This document shows, piece by piece, positions 4,960-41,408 of a stretch of 64,000 nucleotides of DNA; the stretch's first letter is position 1, and every line of letters begins with the position of its first letter. The translations under genes were made by a program, and so were the position numbers. The notes beneath the pieces are model-generated. The model worked only from the letters and a program-made list of their open reading frames with translations, did no database searches and was not told where the DNA came from. The stretch covers positions 284,924-348,923 of IMG/VR virus record IMGVR_UViG_3300014494_000005. The stretch is one strand, 5' to 3'.

Positions 4960-5033
4960 TTTGTTTTATGTTTAATTGGTTTATGAATGAGTATACGTAC
5001 AATGTTGAAAATAGTTACAGTTATTATTTAAAA

Positions 5034-5306
5034 TTAAAAATTATTTGTTTTATTATGTTCAATTAGTTCACTATCTTGTGAACCATTTTTGACCATTAAA
5101 TCAAATTTAATTTTTGCTTTATCGAATGTTTTATATAAACCATTTGAACAAAAAGGGTTTTTAGTAGTTTCGTACACAGCATAAGAAATTCCATTTTTGT
5201 AAGGTTTATTTAATCTTATTAGATTAACAAAACTACCATTTTTGAAATTTGCATATTCAATAAGAGGGCTATTAAATACCCTTCGGGGCAATATTAAGTA
5301 ACTCAT
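5034..5306 (-). CDS. hypothetical protein
   Basis: ORF track; own promoter. Confidence 0.85.
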   Translation of the reverse strand: MSYLILPRRVFNSPLIEYANFKNGSFVNLIRLNKPYKNGISYAVYETTKNPFCSNGLYKTFDKAKIKFDLMVKNGSQDSELIEHNKTNNF

Positions 5307-5401
5307 ATTTTTTTATTATTGGTTTATAATTATAAAGAGTATACGTAAGAAATAAAAAAAGGTTGCAATTTCTCACAACCTTTTTAACATTGTCTTATTG
5401 T

Positions 5402-5920
5402 TTACAGGTATTTATAAAATTCTGAATCTACTTTTATAGTTTCTCTTACTGTTTCCAATTTTTCTTTTAACTCGTGATATTTGTTAAGTTTTGCCTGTTC
5501 TTCATCAAAGTCAAGTACTTTGGTTAAATCTTTGGTTAGGTTATCAAAATCAGTCAAGTTTTTTAGGGTAGTATTATCCATTTCACCCAAGTAAATACTT
5601 TTTTCAAAATACTGGCAGTAATATGTTTTATCTTCATATTTACCACCATTGAAACAAAGTTTAAAATTCAAACAAATTGAATAATTACTTATACTGAAAT
5701 AACAACCCTGATTAGAAGCAAAATCATTATCAGTTAATTTGCAAACATTTGCATTGAAATTAAGAAAATCAATAATAAATTTTGCACTTTTACCGTTCAG
5801 TGTATTGATTTTCTTACCTATGAATTTTTCTAACTGTGGATAGATATGAATTAACTGTTCTAATACTATACGATTTAACTCATTCTTCCCATGTATTTCT
5901 AATTTTAAGTTGGTTTTCAT
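5402..5920 (-). CDS. hypothetical protein
   Basis: ORF track; own promoter and leader. Confidence 0.85.
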   Translation of the reverse strand: MKTNLKLEIHGKNELNRIVLEQLIHIYPQLEKFIGKKINTLNGKSAKFIIDFLNFNANVCKLTDNDFASNQGCYFSISNYSICLNFKLCFNGGKYEDKTYYCQYFEKSIYLGEMDNTTLKNLTDFDNLTKDLTKVLDFDEEQAKLNKYHELKEKLETVRETIKVDSEFYKYL

Positions 5921-5982
5921 TGCTTTATTGTTTTTATTGGTTTATAAAGAGTATACGTACAATATAGAAAATAGTTACAATT

Positions 5983-6180
5983 TTACCTTGAATCAGTGAA
6001 ATAATGACCTTGATTATTATAACCAGAAGATTCACAACCCCTTATGGTTGTTTTTAAATGATAAGAAAGACTGTGACAAAAATGAACAAAATTGTTCCAA
6101 TTTAATTCACATACCGAGTATTGTGGTTCTTTATCCCAATTTATGGCATTTGTACCGACTGTATAGTAATATGTTTTCAT
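5983..6180 (-). CDS. hypothetical protein
   Basis: ORF track; own promoter and leader. Confidence 0.8.
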   Translation of the reverse strand: MKTYYYTVGTNAINWDKEPQYSVCELNWNNFVHFCHSLSYHLKTTIRGCESSGYNNQGHYFTDSR

Positions 6181-6262
6181 TTGCTTTATTGTTTTTGGTT
6201 TATGTATAGTTTAACGTAAGAAATAAAAAAAGGTTACAATTTCTTATAACCTTTTTTACTTA

Positions 6263-6463
6263 TTATCTTTGTTTGAATTTACCGTCATCAATCCAGATAA
6301 TTAAATGGTCATCTGTTGGGACTAACATAATATGATAACCTTTAGATAAGATTATTTCTATAATGATATTACGCATATCAACTGAATAGTCAAATTCTGT
6401 ATTTCTTTCGTATGGCAGGTCATCAAATTTAGTACGCCAATATGATACAATTATTTTTTTCAT
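6263..6463 (-). CDS. hypothetical protein
   Basis: ORF track; own promoter and leader. Confidence 0.8.
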   Translation of the reverse strand: MKKIIVSYWRTKFDDLPYERNTEFDYSVDMRNIIIEIILSKGYHIMLVPTDDHLIIWIDDGKFKQR

Positions 6464-6655
6464 TTTCTTTTTGTTTTTATTGGTTTATGTATGGTTTAAC
6501 GTAAGAAATTAAAAAAGGTTACATTTGCCAGTAAATATAATATTATGGTAAATGTTCTAAAATATATTTATTTTTTGTAACCTTTTTAAATAAAATACGT
6601 TAAATACTATATATTTCACAAAATTTTATTTATTCATTAAAAACCAAAAAGCAAA

Positions 6656-7324
6656 ATGAAAAGAACTAAAAGTGAATTATTGAGTAACACTAAAGACGTA
6701 AAAAACTCAAAGTTTATTGATAACAATACATTAAGTATTGAATATCAAAATGGAATCAAAGCAATACGCTTGCATAATACTGATATTGTCACAATAAAAG
6801 ACAATATGTATATTCTTAATTCTGGTGGCTGGCGTACACCAACAACTAAAGACAGAATTAACAAATATTCACCTGCCAGAATCAGTCAAAACAACGGTCA
6901 ATGGTTTATTAAAGGCTTTTTATTTTACGATGGAATTGAAATTAATCAATCCGGTGACATTGTTTCCAAAAAACTTGAATCTGACAATGATAAAGTTAAT
7001 AAGATGAAAAAGAAAATTTCAGATTATTGTAATCTTGTTACTAAAGAAAATCTGCCTTTACCTTCCTCTGGTGACTGTTGGGATTGTGCATTTATTTCAA
7101 AAGATGGTAAAACAATGGGAGAACTTTCAAATAGCACTCATTTATTAAATCATCTTGACGAAAAGTATTTGCATGGTAGTATTTTAGTTAATGCAATGAG
7201 AGAAACCGGATATAATGACCAGCAAATCGGTTTTCATTACTCAGCAAAATTGTATACTACTTTTAGACGTGCATTAAGAAAGTATTTGCAAAAAAGATTA
7301 ATTGCTAACATAGCAATAAGATAA
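6656..7324 (+). CDS. conserved hypothetical phage protein
   Basis: IRLHNTDIV...LNSGGWRTPTTKDRIN motif recalled from phage proteins. Confidence 0.85.
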   Translation: MKRTKSELLSNTKDVKNSKFIDNNTLSIEYQNGIKAIRLHNTDIVTIKDNMYILNSGGWRTPTTKDRINKYSPARISQNNGQWFIKGFLFYDGIEINQSGDIVSKKLESDNDKVNKMKKKISDYCNLVTKENLPLPSSGDCWDCAFISKDGKTMGELSNSTHLLNHLDEKYLHGSILVNAMRETGYNDQQIGFHYSAKLYTTFRRALRKYLQKRLIANIAIR

Positions 7325-7416
7325 TGTCCAATGTACATAATAAAAGGTTACAATAAAATGTAACCTTTTATATTTTTTTACGTTTAACTATTATAAACCA
7401 ATAAAAACAAAGCAAA

Positions 7417-7629
7417 ATGGAAGTACCTAATATTATTACTGGAATTGACTGGAAGTTATTAAGAAAACAAAAAAGATTATTACTTCAAGTCATAAATAAT
7501 GATAATGTAAATTTTAAAGAAAAGGAAGCATTAGAAGGTATTTTAAATCTTATTGATGCAATACAGGATTATGCTGTTGATGATGCACAAATAGTCACAG
7601 AAATTGAGGTTTTCGGTAAGTTAAAATAA
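7417..7629 (+). CDS. hypothetical protein
   Basis: ORF track; own promoter and leader. Confidence 0.85.
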   Translation: MEVPNIITGIDWKLLRKQKRLLLQVINNDNVNFKEKEALEGILNLIDAIQDYAVDDAQIVTEIEVFGKLK

Positions 7630-39767: not shown

Positions 39768-39792
39768 TATTGTAAAATAAAATAATAAACAA

Positions 39793-40020
39793 ATGAAAAT
39801 ACTATTGGAAGACTATCAAAATAAATTAAAAATAGCAGAAGAATTAGTTGCTGATAATAGAAATAATGGCAGCATTCATGACGAAAAGAGAGCAGAAAGA
39901 TTGCAGACTAAAGCCAGTGAATATCGTGCATTTATTGTCGATATTGAACGTGCAATTGCAAGAGAAGAATCTATAAGACAAAATACGTTATTAGCATTAC
40001 AAGAACTAAATAAATCATAA
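39793..40020 (+). CDS. hypothetical protein
   Basis: ORF track. Confidence 0.8.
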   Translation: MKILLEDYQNKLKIAEELVADNRNNGSIHDEKRAERLQTKASEYRAFIVDIERAIAREESIRQNTLLALQELNKS

Positions 40021-40024
40021 TTCA

Positions 40025-40327
40025 ATGGAACGTAAAACAGCAAAAGTTTATCGTAAAGAACTTGAATATCTTGAAAGAAACATTGAAAATCTTAAAAAAA
40101 GAATTTCTGAAAGACTATTGGAACTCTGTAAGCAAAATCCAGAAGCACCTGTAGCTATAAAAACAAAATTCGATGGTGGTGATACAATTTTTGCTAAATC
40201 AATTAATAATGCAAATTATATTCAATTTATTAGCGTTGATACTCGGCTTAACTTTATTGAAGTAATTGAAAAATATCTGGAAGAACAGCAACCTTATAAA
40301 CAAACTACAATTGAATTTAATAATTAA
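40025..40327 (+). CDS. hypothetical protein
   Basis: ORF track. Confidence 0.8.
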   Translation: MERKTAKVYRKELEYLERNIENLKKRISERLLELCKQNPEAPVAIKTKFDGGDTIFAKSINNANYIQFISVDTRLNFIEVIEKYLEEQQPYKQTTIEFNN

Positions 40328-40462
40328 TATCATATTATGATAATAATAGCAATATTAAAAGTATCAGCATTTATTGTTTTAATTTGTTTTTTGGGTTTTA
40401 TAGCCGAAAAAATAATTAATAGTATTAGTGATTATATAAATCAAAATAAACAATAACTAAAT

Positions 40463-40738
40463 ATGGATAATCAAGAAATAATTGAAGGCAATGAATTGAT
40501 TGCAGATTTTATGAAATCTTTAAGTCCTGATTTGCATTATCATTCTTCATGGAATTGGTTAATGCCAGTAGTTGAAAAAATAGAAGAATTAGATAATGTT
40601 TATGATGTTGAAATACATCCTAACGGAATTTGTAGTATTTTTTCCGATGAAACTTTTGAAAAAGGTGGTGAAAATACTATTGAAGCACTTTGGCTTACAG
40701 TAGTTAGCTTTATTAAATGGTATAATTTAAATAAATAA
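40463..40738 (+). CDS. conserved hypothetical phage protein
   Basis: NELIADFM...YHSSWNWLMPVVEKIE pattern. Confidence 0.85.
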   Translation: MDNQEIIEGNELIADFMKSLSPDLHYHSSWNWLMPVVEKIEELDNVYDVEIHPNGICSIFSDETFEKGGENTIEALWLTVVSFIKWYNLNK

Positions 40739-40757
40739 CAATAATTATAATAATAAC

Positions 40758-40793
40758 AATAATAATAATAATAATAATAATAATAATAATAAT
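40758..40793 (+). repeat. (AAT)12 microsatellite running into a start codon
   Basis: counted directly; last AT plus G forms ATG at 40792. Confidence 0.95.
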
Positions 40794-41127
40794 GTATAGA
40801 ATATCTCAAGATAAACGTAAATGGAGCAGTACACCGATAGCAAAAGTGGTTACTGATGATAATGGTAAAGAAAAAGAAAAACTTGTTTTATGCACTTTCC
40901 TGCCCAAAAAAGAGGGTAATGAATTGTGCGAAAAGATTGTGGAGTTTTTAAATAAAGAAGAATCAAAAATCAATGATAAAAAATGTGGTAATTGTGATTT
41001 ATGGGAATCACATATAATGTCAGAATTAGGAAATTGTAAACTTAAAAGAGAATTTCCACATAATTCTTTACCATATTATACTAAGTATGATTATTGTTGT
41101 AAAGATTGGTATGATTTATTAAAATGA
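40792..41127 (+). CDS. hypothetical protein with C-terminal Cys cluster
   Basis: ORF track. Confidence 0.75.
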   Translation: MYRISQDKRKWSSTPIAKVVTDDNGKEKEKLVLCTFLPKKEGNELCEKIVEFLNKEESKINDKKCGNCDLWESHIMSELGNCKLKREFPHNSLPYYTKYDYCCKDWYDLLK

Positions 41128-41333
41128 GTAGACCAAATTATTTAAACTGTCCAATGACTCCTGAAATTATAAATCATATAAGACAGGAACAAGAAAGATA
41201 TGATAAAAACCCGAAATTATACGAACAGCAGAAAAAAGAGGAACAAGAACTATATTTACAAGAACAAGAAGAAATGATATCTCAGATGAAACAAGAACAA
41301 GAAAGACAAGCAGAAGAATCAAAAAATTTGTAA
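41124..41333 (+). CDS. hypothetical protein
   Basis: ORF track; ATGA coupling. Confidence 0.75.
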   Translation: MSRPNYLNCPMTPEIINHIRQEQERYDKNPKLYEQQKKEEQELYLQEQEEMISQMKQEQERQAEESKNL

Positions 41334-41408
41334 TAATTTCGCTGATTTAACGTATAATAATTCATAAAAACATTTAGTTTTAGTATTAACCAAAAAAATT
41401 TATACACA

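Follow-up and report, generated by a model that had tools for sequence, protein, structure and literature searches.

The terminal 64 kb of a ~349-kb uncultured peat phage (the window, that is, the whole stretch of DNA analyzed here) encodes a SigW-like ECF sigma factor that, with a probability we put at roughly 75%, steers the host RNA polymerase to its own standardised promoter cassettes. The motif GYAAC-N16-CGTW has 34 exact matches in the window, compared with a mean of 0.43 and a maximum of 4 in 100 dinucleotide-preserving shuffles of the same sequence. When the spacer of RYAAC-Nx-CGTW was varied, N16 gave 35 matches and each of N13-15 and N17-20 gave 0-4, which bears out the invariant 16-nt spacer of the original prediction. 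Of the exact matches, 33 lie within 4994-38873, in the range then considered, whose last site (41330-41354) carries one mismatch; the remaining exact match lies outside this range. All exact sites are intergenic or only touch gene ends, and all are sense-oriented. For 31 of the 34, the end of CGTW is followed by an ATG at 19-54 nt, and the other three (16338, 21484 and 23215) consist of an identical 29-mer followed by a conserved non-coding element, so the placement before genes or non-coding RNAs was correctly read. The same holds for the promoters assigned to rIIA (identified by tblastn), rIIB (PHROG RIIB, 3.8e-34) and the GmrSD_N/DUF262 protein (Pfam, 9.7e-16), each of which is directly preceded by a site. 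In the position matrix, G, AAC and CGT are invariant and a T-tract lies 3' of AAC; the spacer is exact in length at 16 nt and variable in sequence, the conservation being that of two short blocks. The sigma gene and the sites are as follows.

4994-5018, minus: predicted promoter of ORF 4438-4959 (motif scan and placement)
5342-5366, minus: predicted promoter of ORF 5034-5306; the -35 element is a hairpin 3' arm
5954-5978, minus: predicted promoter, CGTATACT class, of ORF 5402-5920
6213-6237, minus: predicted promoter, CGTT subclass, of ORF 5983-6180
6498-6522, minus: predicted promoter, CGTT subclass, of ORF 6263-6463
6577-6601, plus: predicted promoter, CGTT subclass, of ORF 6656-7324 (Kyano_Gp96-like)
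7360-7384, plus: predicted promoter, CGTT subclass, of ORF 7417-7629 and probably also of the sigma gene; overlaps a terminator-like hairpin (7340-7371)
7645-7671, plus: degenerate site AATAAC-N17-CGTA directly 5' of the sigma gene (sequence reading)
7705-8271, plus: ECF-type sigma factor gene, 188 aa (Pfam, TIGRFAM-type profile, PDB match)
8273-8297, plus: predicted promoter of ORFs 8331-8513 and 8524-8748
8786-8810, plus: predicted promoter of the conserved 81-aa ORF 8842-9087; hairpin at 8769-8795
9121-9145, plus: predicted promoter of PRTase-like ORF 9177-9665
9667-9691, plus: predicted promoter of PRTase-like ORF 9725-10201
10201-10225, plus: predicted promoter of ORF 10258-10611; metatranscriptome contigs start at 10232, 10237 and 10256
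10653-10677, plus: predicted promoter of ORF 10702-10920
10924-10948, plus: predicted promoter of ORF 10971-11339
11770-11794, plus: predicted promoter of ORF 11825-12133
12137-12161, plus: predicted promoter of ORF 12194-12754
12795-12819, plus: predicted promoter of ORF 12854-13192; the -35 element is a hairpin 3' arm
13196-13220, plus: predicted promoter of ORF 13270-13803
13877-13901, plus: predicted promoter of DUF932 ORF 13932-14828
14859-14883, plus: predicted promoter of ORF 14905-15078; terminator hairpin over the -35 element and spacer
15075-15099, plus: predicted promoter, CGTATAAT class, of ORF 15133-15390
17424-17448, plus: predicted promoter of GP88-family ORF 17480-18307
19616-19640, plus: predicted promoter of ORF 19669-20130
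20806-20830, plus: predicted promoter of ORF 20856-21059
21613-21637, plus: predicted promoter of ORF 21657-22676
28642-28666, plus: predicted promoter of ORF 28712-29329
29930-29954, plus: predicted promoter of repeat protein 29999-31300; the -10 region is also TATATTTG (sigmaA-type -7 box)
32695-32719, plus: predicted promoter of rIIA, 32767-35070
37474-37498, plus: predicted promoter of rIIB, 37543-38787
38849-38873, plus: predicted promoter of GmrSD_N/DUF262 ORF 38895-39767
41330-41354, plus: one-mismatch site GTAAT-N16-CGTATAAT before ORF 41409-41789 (PWM scan)
56299-56323, minus: predicted promoter of ORF 56069-56260; the exact site outside the earlier range

The assignment of 7705-8271 to the ECF sigma factors holds, with Pfam, TIGR02937 and the PDB match to SigW in agreement. 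The protein is a minimal ECF sigma, with sigma-2 at residues 7-78, sigma-4 at 120-171 and nothing else (Sigma70_r2, 3.8e-11; Sigma70_r4_2, 9.6e-9; Sigma70_ECF, 8e-5), and it scores 99 bits against TIGR02937 (cutoff 42.9). The best specific profiles are those of SigW and the Bacteroidetes ECF expansion, the score being below the equivalog cutoffs of both SigW (84.8 vs 209 bits) and TIGR02985, and the closest solved relative is SigW (5wuq, 6.5e-14). The recognition helix GTVKxxIxRxRE is common to the phage protein and SigW and is kept across the phage clade described below.

The motif fits the ECF promoter architecture that had been proposed for it: the published SigW grammar, tGAAACnTTTt ... 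CGTA, is the same down to the T-tract, which is known from ECF promoters, and the -10 for which SigW is selective is CGTA (PMC5758882). Bacillus subtilis SigW thus resembles the phage sigma in being a two-domain ECF factor (and its best PDB and equivalog-type match), in combining an AAC -35, proximal T-tract, CGTA(TA) -10 and 16-nt spacer, and in having its gene preceded by a promoter of the type that it reads. The two differ in that identity is only ~30%, the -35 is TGAAAC for SigW and TGTAAC in the phage, an RsiW-like anti-sigma does not adjoin the phage gene, and SigW serves a cellular stress regulon whereas the phage factor would serve phage genes, with roughly one promoter in each kb.

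In the mechanism that we propose, the minimal SigW-like sigma would bind the host core RNA polymerase, and the polymerase so loaded would go to a cassette comprising, in this order, an A/T-rich upstream stretch, the -35 element TG(T/C)AAC, the T-tract, and the -10 element CGTA, mostly extended to CGTATA(A/C)T and placed exactly 16 nt 3' of AAC, and ending in a conserved leader without a Shine-Dalgarno motif (...TATAAACCAATAAAAACAA..ATG). At least 34 such cassettes would drive short units, mostly of one gene each, and the putative regulon would take in the genes of rIIA, rIIB and a GmrSD-like protein as well as numerous small ORFs and a small non-coding RNA present in three copies. Given rIIA, rIIB and the many small ORFs, its timing looks early or middle rather than late.

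The sigma gene itself would belong to this regulon. The degenerate site reported directly upstream of it (7645-7671) is present; the G present in every one of the 34 window sites is missing from it, and it resembles an N17 '..TCAATGTACGTA' class often seen in the relative L130. Overlooked, however, was the full site 7360-7384, which precedes the 70-codon ORF immediately 5' of the sigma gene and from which, one small ORF upstream, the sigma gene is probably co-transcribed. Co-transcription from this site, together with the weak proximal site, would result in positive feedback. As stated previously, no anti-sigma is evident nearby, none having been detected by profile searches among the neighbors of the sigma gene.

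Should this reading hold, it would be a clear new case of a phage-borne sigma redirecting the host RNA polymerase, a principle already known from, e.g., phiEco32 gp36, a distant sigma-70-family protein that takes the host core polymerase to phage promoters unread by the host sigma (PMC12276001). The likeness to gp36 is one of function and shared superfamily: the promoters of gp36 consist of one AATGTA element at -11.5 and require gp79, whereas the bipartite promoters described here are of the canonical ECF kind and no counterpart of gp79 was identified for the phage sigma; furthermore, gp36 follows early sigma70 transcription, whereas the sigma gene of this phage is preceded by a promoter of the type assigned to its own product. 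The 'group 2' jumbo phages and T4, large phages that have no RNA polymerase of their own, likewise recruit the host enzyme through sigma factors (PMC7824862). Among deposited phage genomes, the nearest relatives of the sigma gene are the 'Sigma-W factor' genes of crAss-like phages (26-33% identity), which are also phages of Bacteroidota; these genes fall outside the motif-linked clade. T4 gp55 has a region-2-like domain only, recognizes just a -10 motif, TATAAATA, and depends on gp33 and the sliding clamp in late transcription, in contrast to the sigma-2 plus sigma-4 protein, the bipartite promoter and the apparently early or middle regulon found here.

A Shine-Dalgarno-like motif precedes only 3 of 131 genes, and TAnnTTTG occurs in the sense orientation before nine units without the ECF motif, compared with 3.3 expected (a count reached in 2 of 500 shuffles). 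Given that both features are flavobacterial (PMC9723704), the host is probably a member of the Bacteroidota. Other parts of the 64-kb window contain long operons of closely spaced genes from which the ECF motif is absent, and some of these operons have a host sigmaA-type TAnnTTTG box at their head; therefore, two promoter classes seem to be in use in the phage.

The relationship between motif and sigma was examined in databases by two independent approaches, a motif scan and a sigma search. Sigma orthologues of 74% and 43% identity have the same motif all around them. When IMG/VR was scanned with the motif alone, loci with sigma homologues were retrieved; when the sigma alone was searched for, each of the 7 loci with >=39% identity had 6-32 sites per <=20 kb. 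Three further phage-like contigs, binned in MAGs, likewise combine a sigma relative with dense sites. Altogether, sites are dense in all 10 lineages whose sigma is >=37-39% identical, and the motif-dense sigmas form one clade (support 99/95), compared with 0-1 sites in each of 23 outgroup phage-ECF loci, 6 of them AT-rich. A site is also retained across lineages at orthologous genes, namely, the GP88-family gene (in L003 and L007) and the 81-aa ORF. Because the link between clade and motif may go back to a single ancestral event, it shows co-inheritance rather than function. From this link and the SigW-like nature of the protein we infer, in line with the original prediction, that the sigma binds these sites.

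Bacteroidota typically have many ECF sigmas, and one of these, perhaps triggered by infection as an envelope-stress response, could read all the sites, the phage sigma then being redundant or reserved for an unseen class such as late genes. The motif is near-constant while the phage sigmas diverge to 37-74% identity, as it would be if a conserved host factor read it; the sigma gene, too, is preceded by this type of promoter, so that some other, pre-existing factor must start its expression at least once, and CGT-box ECF promoters exist in flavobacteria (PMC9723704). We nevertheless regard this alternative as unlikely, given that a normally sequestered stress sigma would be a risky dependence for about one promoter per kb, that the motif goes with the phage sigma clade, the AT-rich outgroup phages with other ECF sigmas lacking it, and that the SigW-like recognition helix suits the motif. 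Moreover, in three distant relatives, including L031 (at both of its sigma paralogues) and L043, a sigmaA-type -7 box (TAnnTTTG) precedes the sigma gene, and in L031 and L043 the genes adjoining it carry the ECF motif, as expected if the phage sigma reads that motif. Judged by sequence, this layout resembles a classical cascade in which the sigma would be expressed from the host sigmaA-type box.

The sites divide into CGTT, CGTATACT and CGTATAAT subclasses, of which CGTT is sigma-proximal and recurs across lineages, and the last -10 base can switch ECF sigma specificity (PMC5758882). Considering also the two paralogues of the motif-linked clade in L031, the sigma at 7705 might read a subset only (CGTT or CGTA, for example), the others being left to another phage sigma or RNA polymerase in the remaining ~285 kb. 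This, too, appears improbable because a pattern-based search of the 349-kb contig found just one locus of the sigma family and a two-part AAC/CGT motif at constant spacing points to a sigma rather than a single-subunit phage polymerase.

Recognition by the host sigma70/sigmaA of the TATAAT-like part of CGTATAAT with a TTGTAA-like -35 is very doubtful. TATAAT or TATACT does directly follow CG in many sites, and a simple sigma-70 scan finds GTAACA-N17-TATAAT at several of them, but it is G, AAC and CGT that never vary, not the TATAAT positions, TATAAT is missing from the CGTT subclass, the TTGTAA hexamer would be 19 nt from TATAAT, and sigma-70-like matches overall are not enriched (156 vs 155.7 expected); besides, the host signals are of the Bacteroidota type, and the sigmaA of Bacteroidota has a different consensus.

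The region is covered by assembled contigs of four peat metatranscriptomes, which are unstranded and may include DNA carry-over. These contigs begin preferentially just 3' of sites: of 30 left ends, 11 are located 5-40 nt 3' of a CGTW end, compared with 3 among 28 right ends (binomial p = 2e-6), and several contigs span promoters. Functions other than that of a promoter (an intergenic cassette that is mobile or recombinogenic, a terminator/insulator or a repressor site), suggested by the repetition of the complete cassette with its leader and by the terminator-like hairpins that seven sites overlap, are hardly compatible with these contig starts, the strict sense orientation and fixed distance to start codons, the two short blocks at exactly 16 nt around a variable spacer, and the recurrence of the same grammar with different leaders in distant phages.

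The following elements belong to the non-coding copies and to the small protein encoded next to the sigma gene.

16338-16362, plus: predicted promoter, non-coding element copy 1
16366-16480, plus: candidate small RNA, copy 1
21484-21508, plus: predicted promoter, non-coding element copy 2
21509-21612, plus: candidate small RNA, copy 2
23215-23239, plus: predicted promoter, non-coding element copy 3
23240-23345, plus: candidate small RNA, copy 3
8842-9087, plus: conserved 81-aa protein (phrog_13953, PHROG 7.7e-26)

The candidate small RNA is conserved in the three window copies and in L003, and a search of Rfam gave no match. The AlphaFold model of the 81-aa protein (pLDDT 90) had no match in a PDB comparison; orthologues with 52-89% identity are encoded near the sigma gene in L003, L007, L128, L129, L130 and L031, which makes this protein a candidate partner of the sigma. 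Several cassettes overlap the terminator hairpin of the preceding gene.

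The ECF motif G(T/C)AAC-N16-CGT(A/T) occurs 34 times as an exact match in the window, compared with 0.43 on average, and at most 4, in 100 dinucleotide-preserving shuffles. The spacer preference is pronounced: RYAAC-Nx-CGTW gives 35 matches at N16 and 0-4 at each other spacing from N13 to N20, and even the bare AAC-Nx-CGT is found 45 times at N16 vs 6-18 times at other spacings. In a greedy ORF map, all exact sites are intergenic or touch only the end of a gene and all face the gene that follows; for 31 of the 34, CGTW ends 19-54 nt 5' of an ATG. The specificity for a 16-nt spacer and the correct orientation before a gene or non-coding element, both included in the original prediction, are confirmed by the spacing counts and the ORF map. 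The predicted number of 35 promoters within 4994-41354 is reproduced in part, with 33 exact sites in this range and the last one (41330-41354) being a one-mismatch version; a further exact site lies beyond it, on the minus strand (56299-56323).

In the count matrix of the 34 sites, the G, AAC and CGT are invariant, T precedes the G in 30 sites, a T-tract directly follows AAC (25-33 of 34 across four positions), T is found two bases 5' of CGT in 33, and A-T-A-(A/C)-T follows CGT in most. Because conservation extends beyond the -10 element into the leader (...TATAAACCAATAAAAACAA.AAAGCAATG), promoter and leader form a single repeated cassette. The cassettes come in three flavours, exemplified by CGTT at site 7360, CGTATACT at 10201 and CGTATAAT at 16338:

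Sites 6213, 6498, 6577 and 7360: CGTT(T/A)AA flavour, the four sites near the sigma gene
Sites 4994 to 13901: GTAACC...CGTATACTCAT flavour
Sites 14859 onward: GTAACA...CGTATAAT flavour

Between 4900 and 24800, there are 20 terminator-like hairpins vs 4.7 expected. In seven of these, the -35 element forms the 3' arm and the promoter T-tract is the T-run of the terminator (U-run in RNA); therefore the terminator and the following promoter are fused into one compact module:

7340-7371, 8769-8795, 9109-9127, 12782-12801, 5356-5385, 6213-6250 and 14848-14875: hairpins with the -35 element as 3' arm

The AGGTTGC...GCAACCT hairpin of the fused modules is also found alone at 13828-13848, and similar modules are present in four loci of relatives (L003, L007, L129 and L130).

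The sigma (188 aa; 7705-8271, plus strand) consists of Sigma70_r2 (residues 7-78) and Sigma70_r4_2 (120-171), with no other Pfam domain, that is, the sigma-2 plus sigma-4 organization of ECF sigmas, without region 1.1 or region 3. It scores 99 bits against the sigma70-ECF profile TIGR02937 (cutoff 42.9). The highest-scoring specific profiles, for SigW and for the Bacteroidetes ECF expansion family, stay below cutoff, with 84.8 vs 209 bits and 72.7 vs 243 for the SigW equivalogs (NF007223 / TIGR02948) and 81.5 bits for TIGR02985 (cutoff 126.4), against which the orthologue P0002 reaches 96.1. Among solved structures, B. subtilis SigW is closest (5wuq, E = 6.5e-14), and its region-4 recognition helix closely resembles that of the phage sigma (GTVKxxIxRxRE); this helix is kept across the phage clade, with V161, K162 and R167 invariant. 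The sigma is predicted to work like SigW, yet it is not a SigW orthologue. Among the B. subtilis ECF sigmas, CGTA is the -10 element selective for SigW, the last -10 base switches specificity between sigmas, and the -35 element has the consensus tGAAACnTTTt, in which a homopolymeric T-tract is stimulatory (PMC5758882). The SigW-like architecture proposed for the motif matches this published grammar feature by feature: the 34 N16 sites combine the AAC -35, the CGT -10 and the fixed spacing of ECF-family promoters, and would be bound by the sigma.

The association of the sigma with the motif extends to relatives. Two IMG/VR contigs, of 207,816 and 348,923 bp, encode this same sigma protein, and the last 64 kb of the larger one are the window. 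The same motif surrounds the orthologues in locus L003 (74% identity; 32 sites in 20.5 kb) and in loci L007 and L008 (43% identity, GC 34.5%; 11-12 sites in 15 kb). A motif-only scan of IMG/VR (TGTAAC-N16-CGTATAAT) returned mainly lone chance matches and a few motif-dense loci, and six of the loci so recovered proved by tblastn to encode homologues of the sigma (24-49% identity). Conversely, a sigma-only search of IMG/VR, with a 6-sequence sigma alignment as the query, yielded 29 loci. Each of the 7 phages whose sigma is >=39% identical carries 6-32 sites per <=20 kb, compared with 0-1 sites in all 23 outgroup phage-ECF loci, six AT-rich ones included. Three more contigs, from bins labelled Lutibacter, Lentimicrobium and Saccharibacteria, encode sigmas of 37-42% identity together with the same cassette and look like binned phage DNA. 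In the maximum-likelihood tree, 11 sigma sequences of ten motif-dense loci form one clade (support 99/95). The sister lineages L130 and L158 mostly use a 17-nt spacer. Across lineages, sites are retained at orthologous genes (GP88 and an 81-aa ORF) despite diverged intergenic sequence. As a caveat to these comparisons, a single clade with both traits demonstrates co-inheritance of sigma and motif, and a functional link between the two is suggested because the type of sigma matches the type of promoter. No near-identical phage was found by megablast of 20 kb against 50,697 GenBank phages; the nearest deposited phage relatives are crAss-like 'sigma-W' genes (~30% identity).

The region directly upstream of the sigma gene differs between lineages. 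The degenerate site predicted there is indeed present, as a decayed site, in both the window phage and L003, and in both a full site is found on the far (5') side of a small ORF; in the window phage, this is 7360-7384, which is 322 nt 5' of the sigma gene and precedes an intervening 70-codon ORF. In L007 and L063, a full site is directly 5' of the sigma gene. In L043 and before both paralogues of L031, the ECF site is replaced by TAnnTTTG, the -7 box of Bacteroidota sigmaA (the host housekeeping sigma), and L031a has a TTTG-N20-TATCTTTG arrangement. The L031/L043 layout is that of a classical cascade, in which host sigmaA would make the phage sigma, which would then read the ECF-type promoters; of the internal arguments for the phage sigma as the reader of the motif, this layout is the strongest.

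The usual CGTATA is missing from the sigma-nearest site in 8 of 11 lineages, compared with 66 of the 229 remaining sites (Fisher p = 0.004), and sigma-proximal sites often read TGAAAC ... CGT(T/A)(A/T)AA. Near the sigma gene, a subclass with CGTT(T/A)AA or CGTAAAAG, in many cases combined with a TGAAAC -35 element, was observed in the window (6213-7384) and in L003, L007, L128, L157, L158 and L159. The sigma-proximal subclass may represent immediate-early promoters or promoters that are read in a different way.

ECF (group 4) sigmas typically, albeit not universally, are co-transcribed with an anti-sigma. The three neighbouring ORFs of the sigma gene (7417-7629, 8331-8513 and 8524-8748) have no match to an anti-sigma in Pfam, NCBIfam or PHROGs, in agreement with the earlier remark that none is evident nearby. 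The question that this arrangement poses is how to start a regulon whose sigma gene follows its own type of promoter, without an anti-sigma. In the window phage, the starter could be a host ECF sigma that recognizes the CGTT subclass, sigma protein that is packaged, or read-through. A further scenario, which we consider unlikely, is that the early programme of this phage family, the sigma gene included, depends mostly or wholly on ECF-type rather than host sigmaA promoters; it would be started by a host envelope-stress ECF sigma that infection activates and that acts on the sigma-proximal CGTT/TGAAAC subclass, or by sigma delivered with the virion, and positive feedback would then lock it in, without an anti-sigma. 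A candidate sigmaA-type starter box at 6520-6527 was dropped since it is not conserved in L003.

The region is present in 14 peat or bioreactor metatranscriptome runs, and contigs of four runs were placed on 6500-12400. Depth is uneven between genes, and many contigs coincide with one gene each. Of the 30 left ends listed, 11 fall 5-40 nt after the end of CGTW, within intervals that make up 6.7% of the stretch, vs 3 of 28 right ends (binomial p = 2e-6; Fisher p = 0.03). At promoter 10201-10225, contigs of three runs start at +7, +12 and +31. The contigs are unstranded, with possible DNA carry-over, and several of them span promoters; the ends are supportive in a statistical sense only, and they are not a TSS map from which a single-nucleotide start could be called. 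An Illumina adaptor abuts contigs at 10972, 10986, 12185 and 12189 (two runs, from different studies), which is +24 to +38 relative to CGTA at promoters 10924 and 12137 and not at the expected start. These are defined RNA fragment ends near start codons, which may stem from processing or from a library artefact.

Retargeting of host RNA polymerase by phage sigmas is well known, SPO1 gp28 and phiEco32 gp36 being the type examples, and the window sigma would be a new example of this known principle. Together with its cofactor gp79, phiEco32 gp36 reads AATGTA promoters (PMC12276001), and sigma factors are common in jumbo phages that lack their own RNA polymerase (PMC7824862). The dCas12f-sigmaE system of Bacteroidetes, in which a Cas12f/TnpB-linked sigma supports RNA-guided, promoter-motif-independent transcription (PMC13472631), was rejected as a model, given that the nearest TnpB genes are ~44 kb from the sigma gene and the targets carry the canonical motif. 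What appears unusual in the window phage is the SigW-like promoter grammar at approximately one promoter per kb, the putative fused terminator-promoter-leader cassettes combined with promoter-driven candidate small RNAs, and the location of the sigma gene within its own putative regulon, where the promoters form a distinct subclass and no anti-sigma was detected. Full-text searches, which covered few subscription journals, turned up no account of an ECF sigma from a phage whose bipartite regulon is defined, nor of this phage group, the transcription programmes of which are essentially undescribed. The window provides an unusually clean, sequence-defined putative pair of sigma and promoter from widespread large uncultured phages with probable Bacteroidota hosts, with which these genomes can be annotated from sequence alone for transcription units, for candidate small RNAs and for temporal classes; as a compact orthogonal sigma/promoter/leader module, it is also a possible genetic tool for Bacteroidota.

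The assignment to a phage is made because the 348,923-bp contig belongs to the IMG/VR viral set, encodes rIIA/rIIB and has PHROG hits; no capsid or terminase gene is found within the 64-kb window of the ~349-kb contig. A Bacteroidota host is probable: the two closest matches in bacterial genome bins are both Bacteroidota, and a Shine-Dalgarno-like motif precedes only 3 of 131 window genes. In flavobacteria, genes lack a Shine-Dalgarno sequence and the sigmaA -7 box is TAnnTTTG (PMC9723704). Upstream of the units without the ECF motif, this box occurs in sense orientation 9 times (3.3 expected; a count attained by 2 of 500 shuffles), mostly as TATATTTG:

566-573, 16887-16894 and 31341-31348: TAnnTTTG boxes before non-ECF units
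28584-28591, 52000-52007, 54291-54298, 60436-60443 and 60974-60981, minus strand: TAnnTTTG boxes before non-ECF units

These look like Bacteroidota sigmaA -7 boxes that would head long operons, such as the minus-strand ones starting at 28561 and 51968, which contain no ECF-type site. Bare TAnnTTTG is not enriched window-wide (111 vs 140), and only the test restricted to sense upstream positions is significant. A second, sigmaA-type promoter class is no more than suggestive, since the full bipartite consensus TTTG-N18-22-TAnnTTTG is not enriched in the window (5 vs 3.9). The window motif is distinct from these boxes and, with the sigma gene on the phage genome, constitutes a phage-specific promoter class.

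Three sites, 16338, 21484 and 23215, share an identical 29-mer, which has exact occurrences at just these three places in each IMG/VR genome copy, and each precedes a conserved element of ~100 nt without an ORF:

16366-16480, plus strand: non-coding element behind an identical ECF-type promoter
21509-21612, plus strand: second copy, same promoter
23240-23345, plus strand: third copy, same promoter

An orthologue of the element is present in L003 (17438-17560). The three-copy element looks like a candidate family of phage small RNAs. The consensus structure of the copies includes only a 6-bp A/U-rich 3' hairpin, with no meaningful covariation; Rfam detected no family at the gathering score in the window, and no tRNA was found either, with only sub-threshold, chance-level matches in a permissive Rfam search of 16300-23500. 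A distinct non-coding element, also promoter-driven, is found in relatives; its copies have a GGCAGGGTAAAACTTGGGTGCAGTAATCC-like core in common and match neither Rfam nor a tRNA:

L007, ~11372-11420
L013, ~5010-4960, minus strand
L129, ~16775 and ~19115

The 81-aa protein (8842-9087, plus strand; phrog_13953) is encoded near the sigma gene in six relatives (52-89% identity) and is conserved better than the sigma. Its predicted four-helix fold is confident (pLDDT 90); there is no match in PDB, and a protein atlas search gave only viral hypotheticals. It is a candidate partner only, which may act as a cofactor of the sigma or inhibit the host sigma.

Several other genes deserve mention. The 433-aa ORF 29999-31300 (no family match) includes a 12-nt tandem repeat of ~25 units (30289-30597) that encodes (N-T-L-[Y/D/R])n, and its promoter, 29930-29954, also holds a TATATTTG box. 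Four to five tandem paralogous ORFs of ~140 aa each occupy 35589-37449, and two adjoining PRTase-like paralogues (9177-10201) are 79% identical at the nucleotide level over 280 nt. Immediately upstream of rIIA is a LAGLIDADG homing-endonuclease-like ORF (31867-32706, plus strand) that ends in a zinc ribbon; the rIIA promoter overlaps the 3' end of this ORF. In L007, a 992-aa ART-PolyVal protein (638-3616; polyvalent, possibly injected) is encoded ~3 kb upstream of the sigma gene. None of the following window genes has an ECF-type site:

52068-53216 and 54604-55845: TnpB (IS605 OrfB / Cas12f-like), two copies
63032-63841, minus strand: tyrosine integrase
51139-51747, minus strand: ClpP
58314-58868, minus strand: peptide deformylase with SEC-C motif
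43802-44863, minus strand: AAA ATPase
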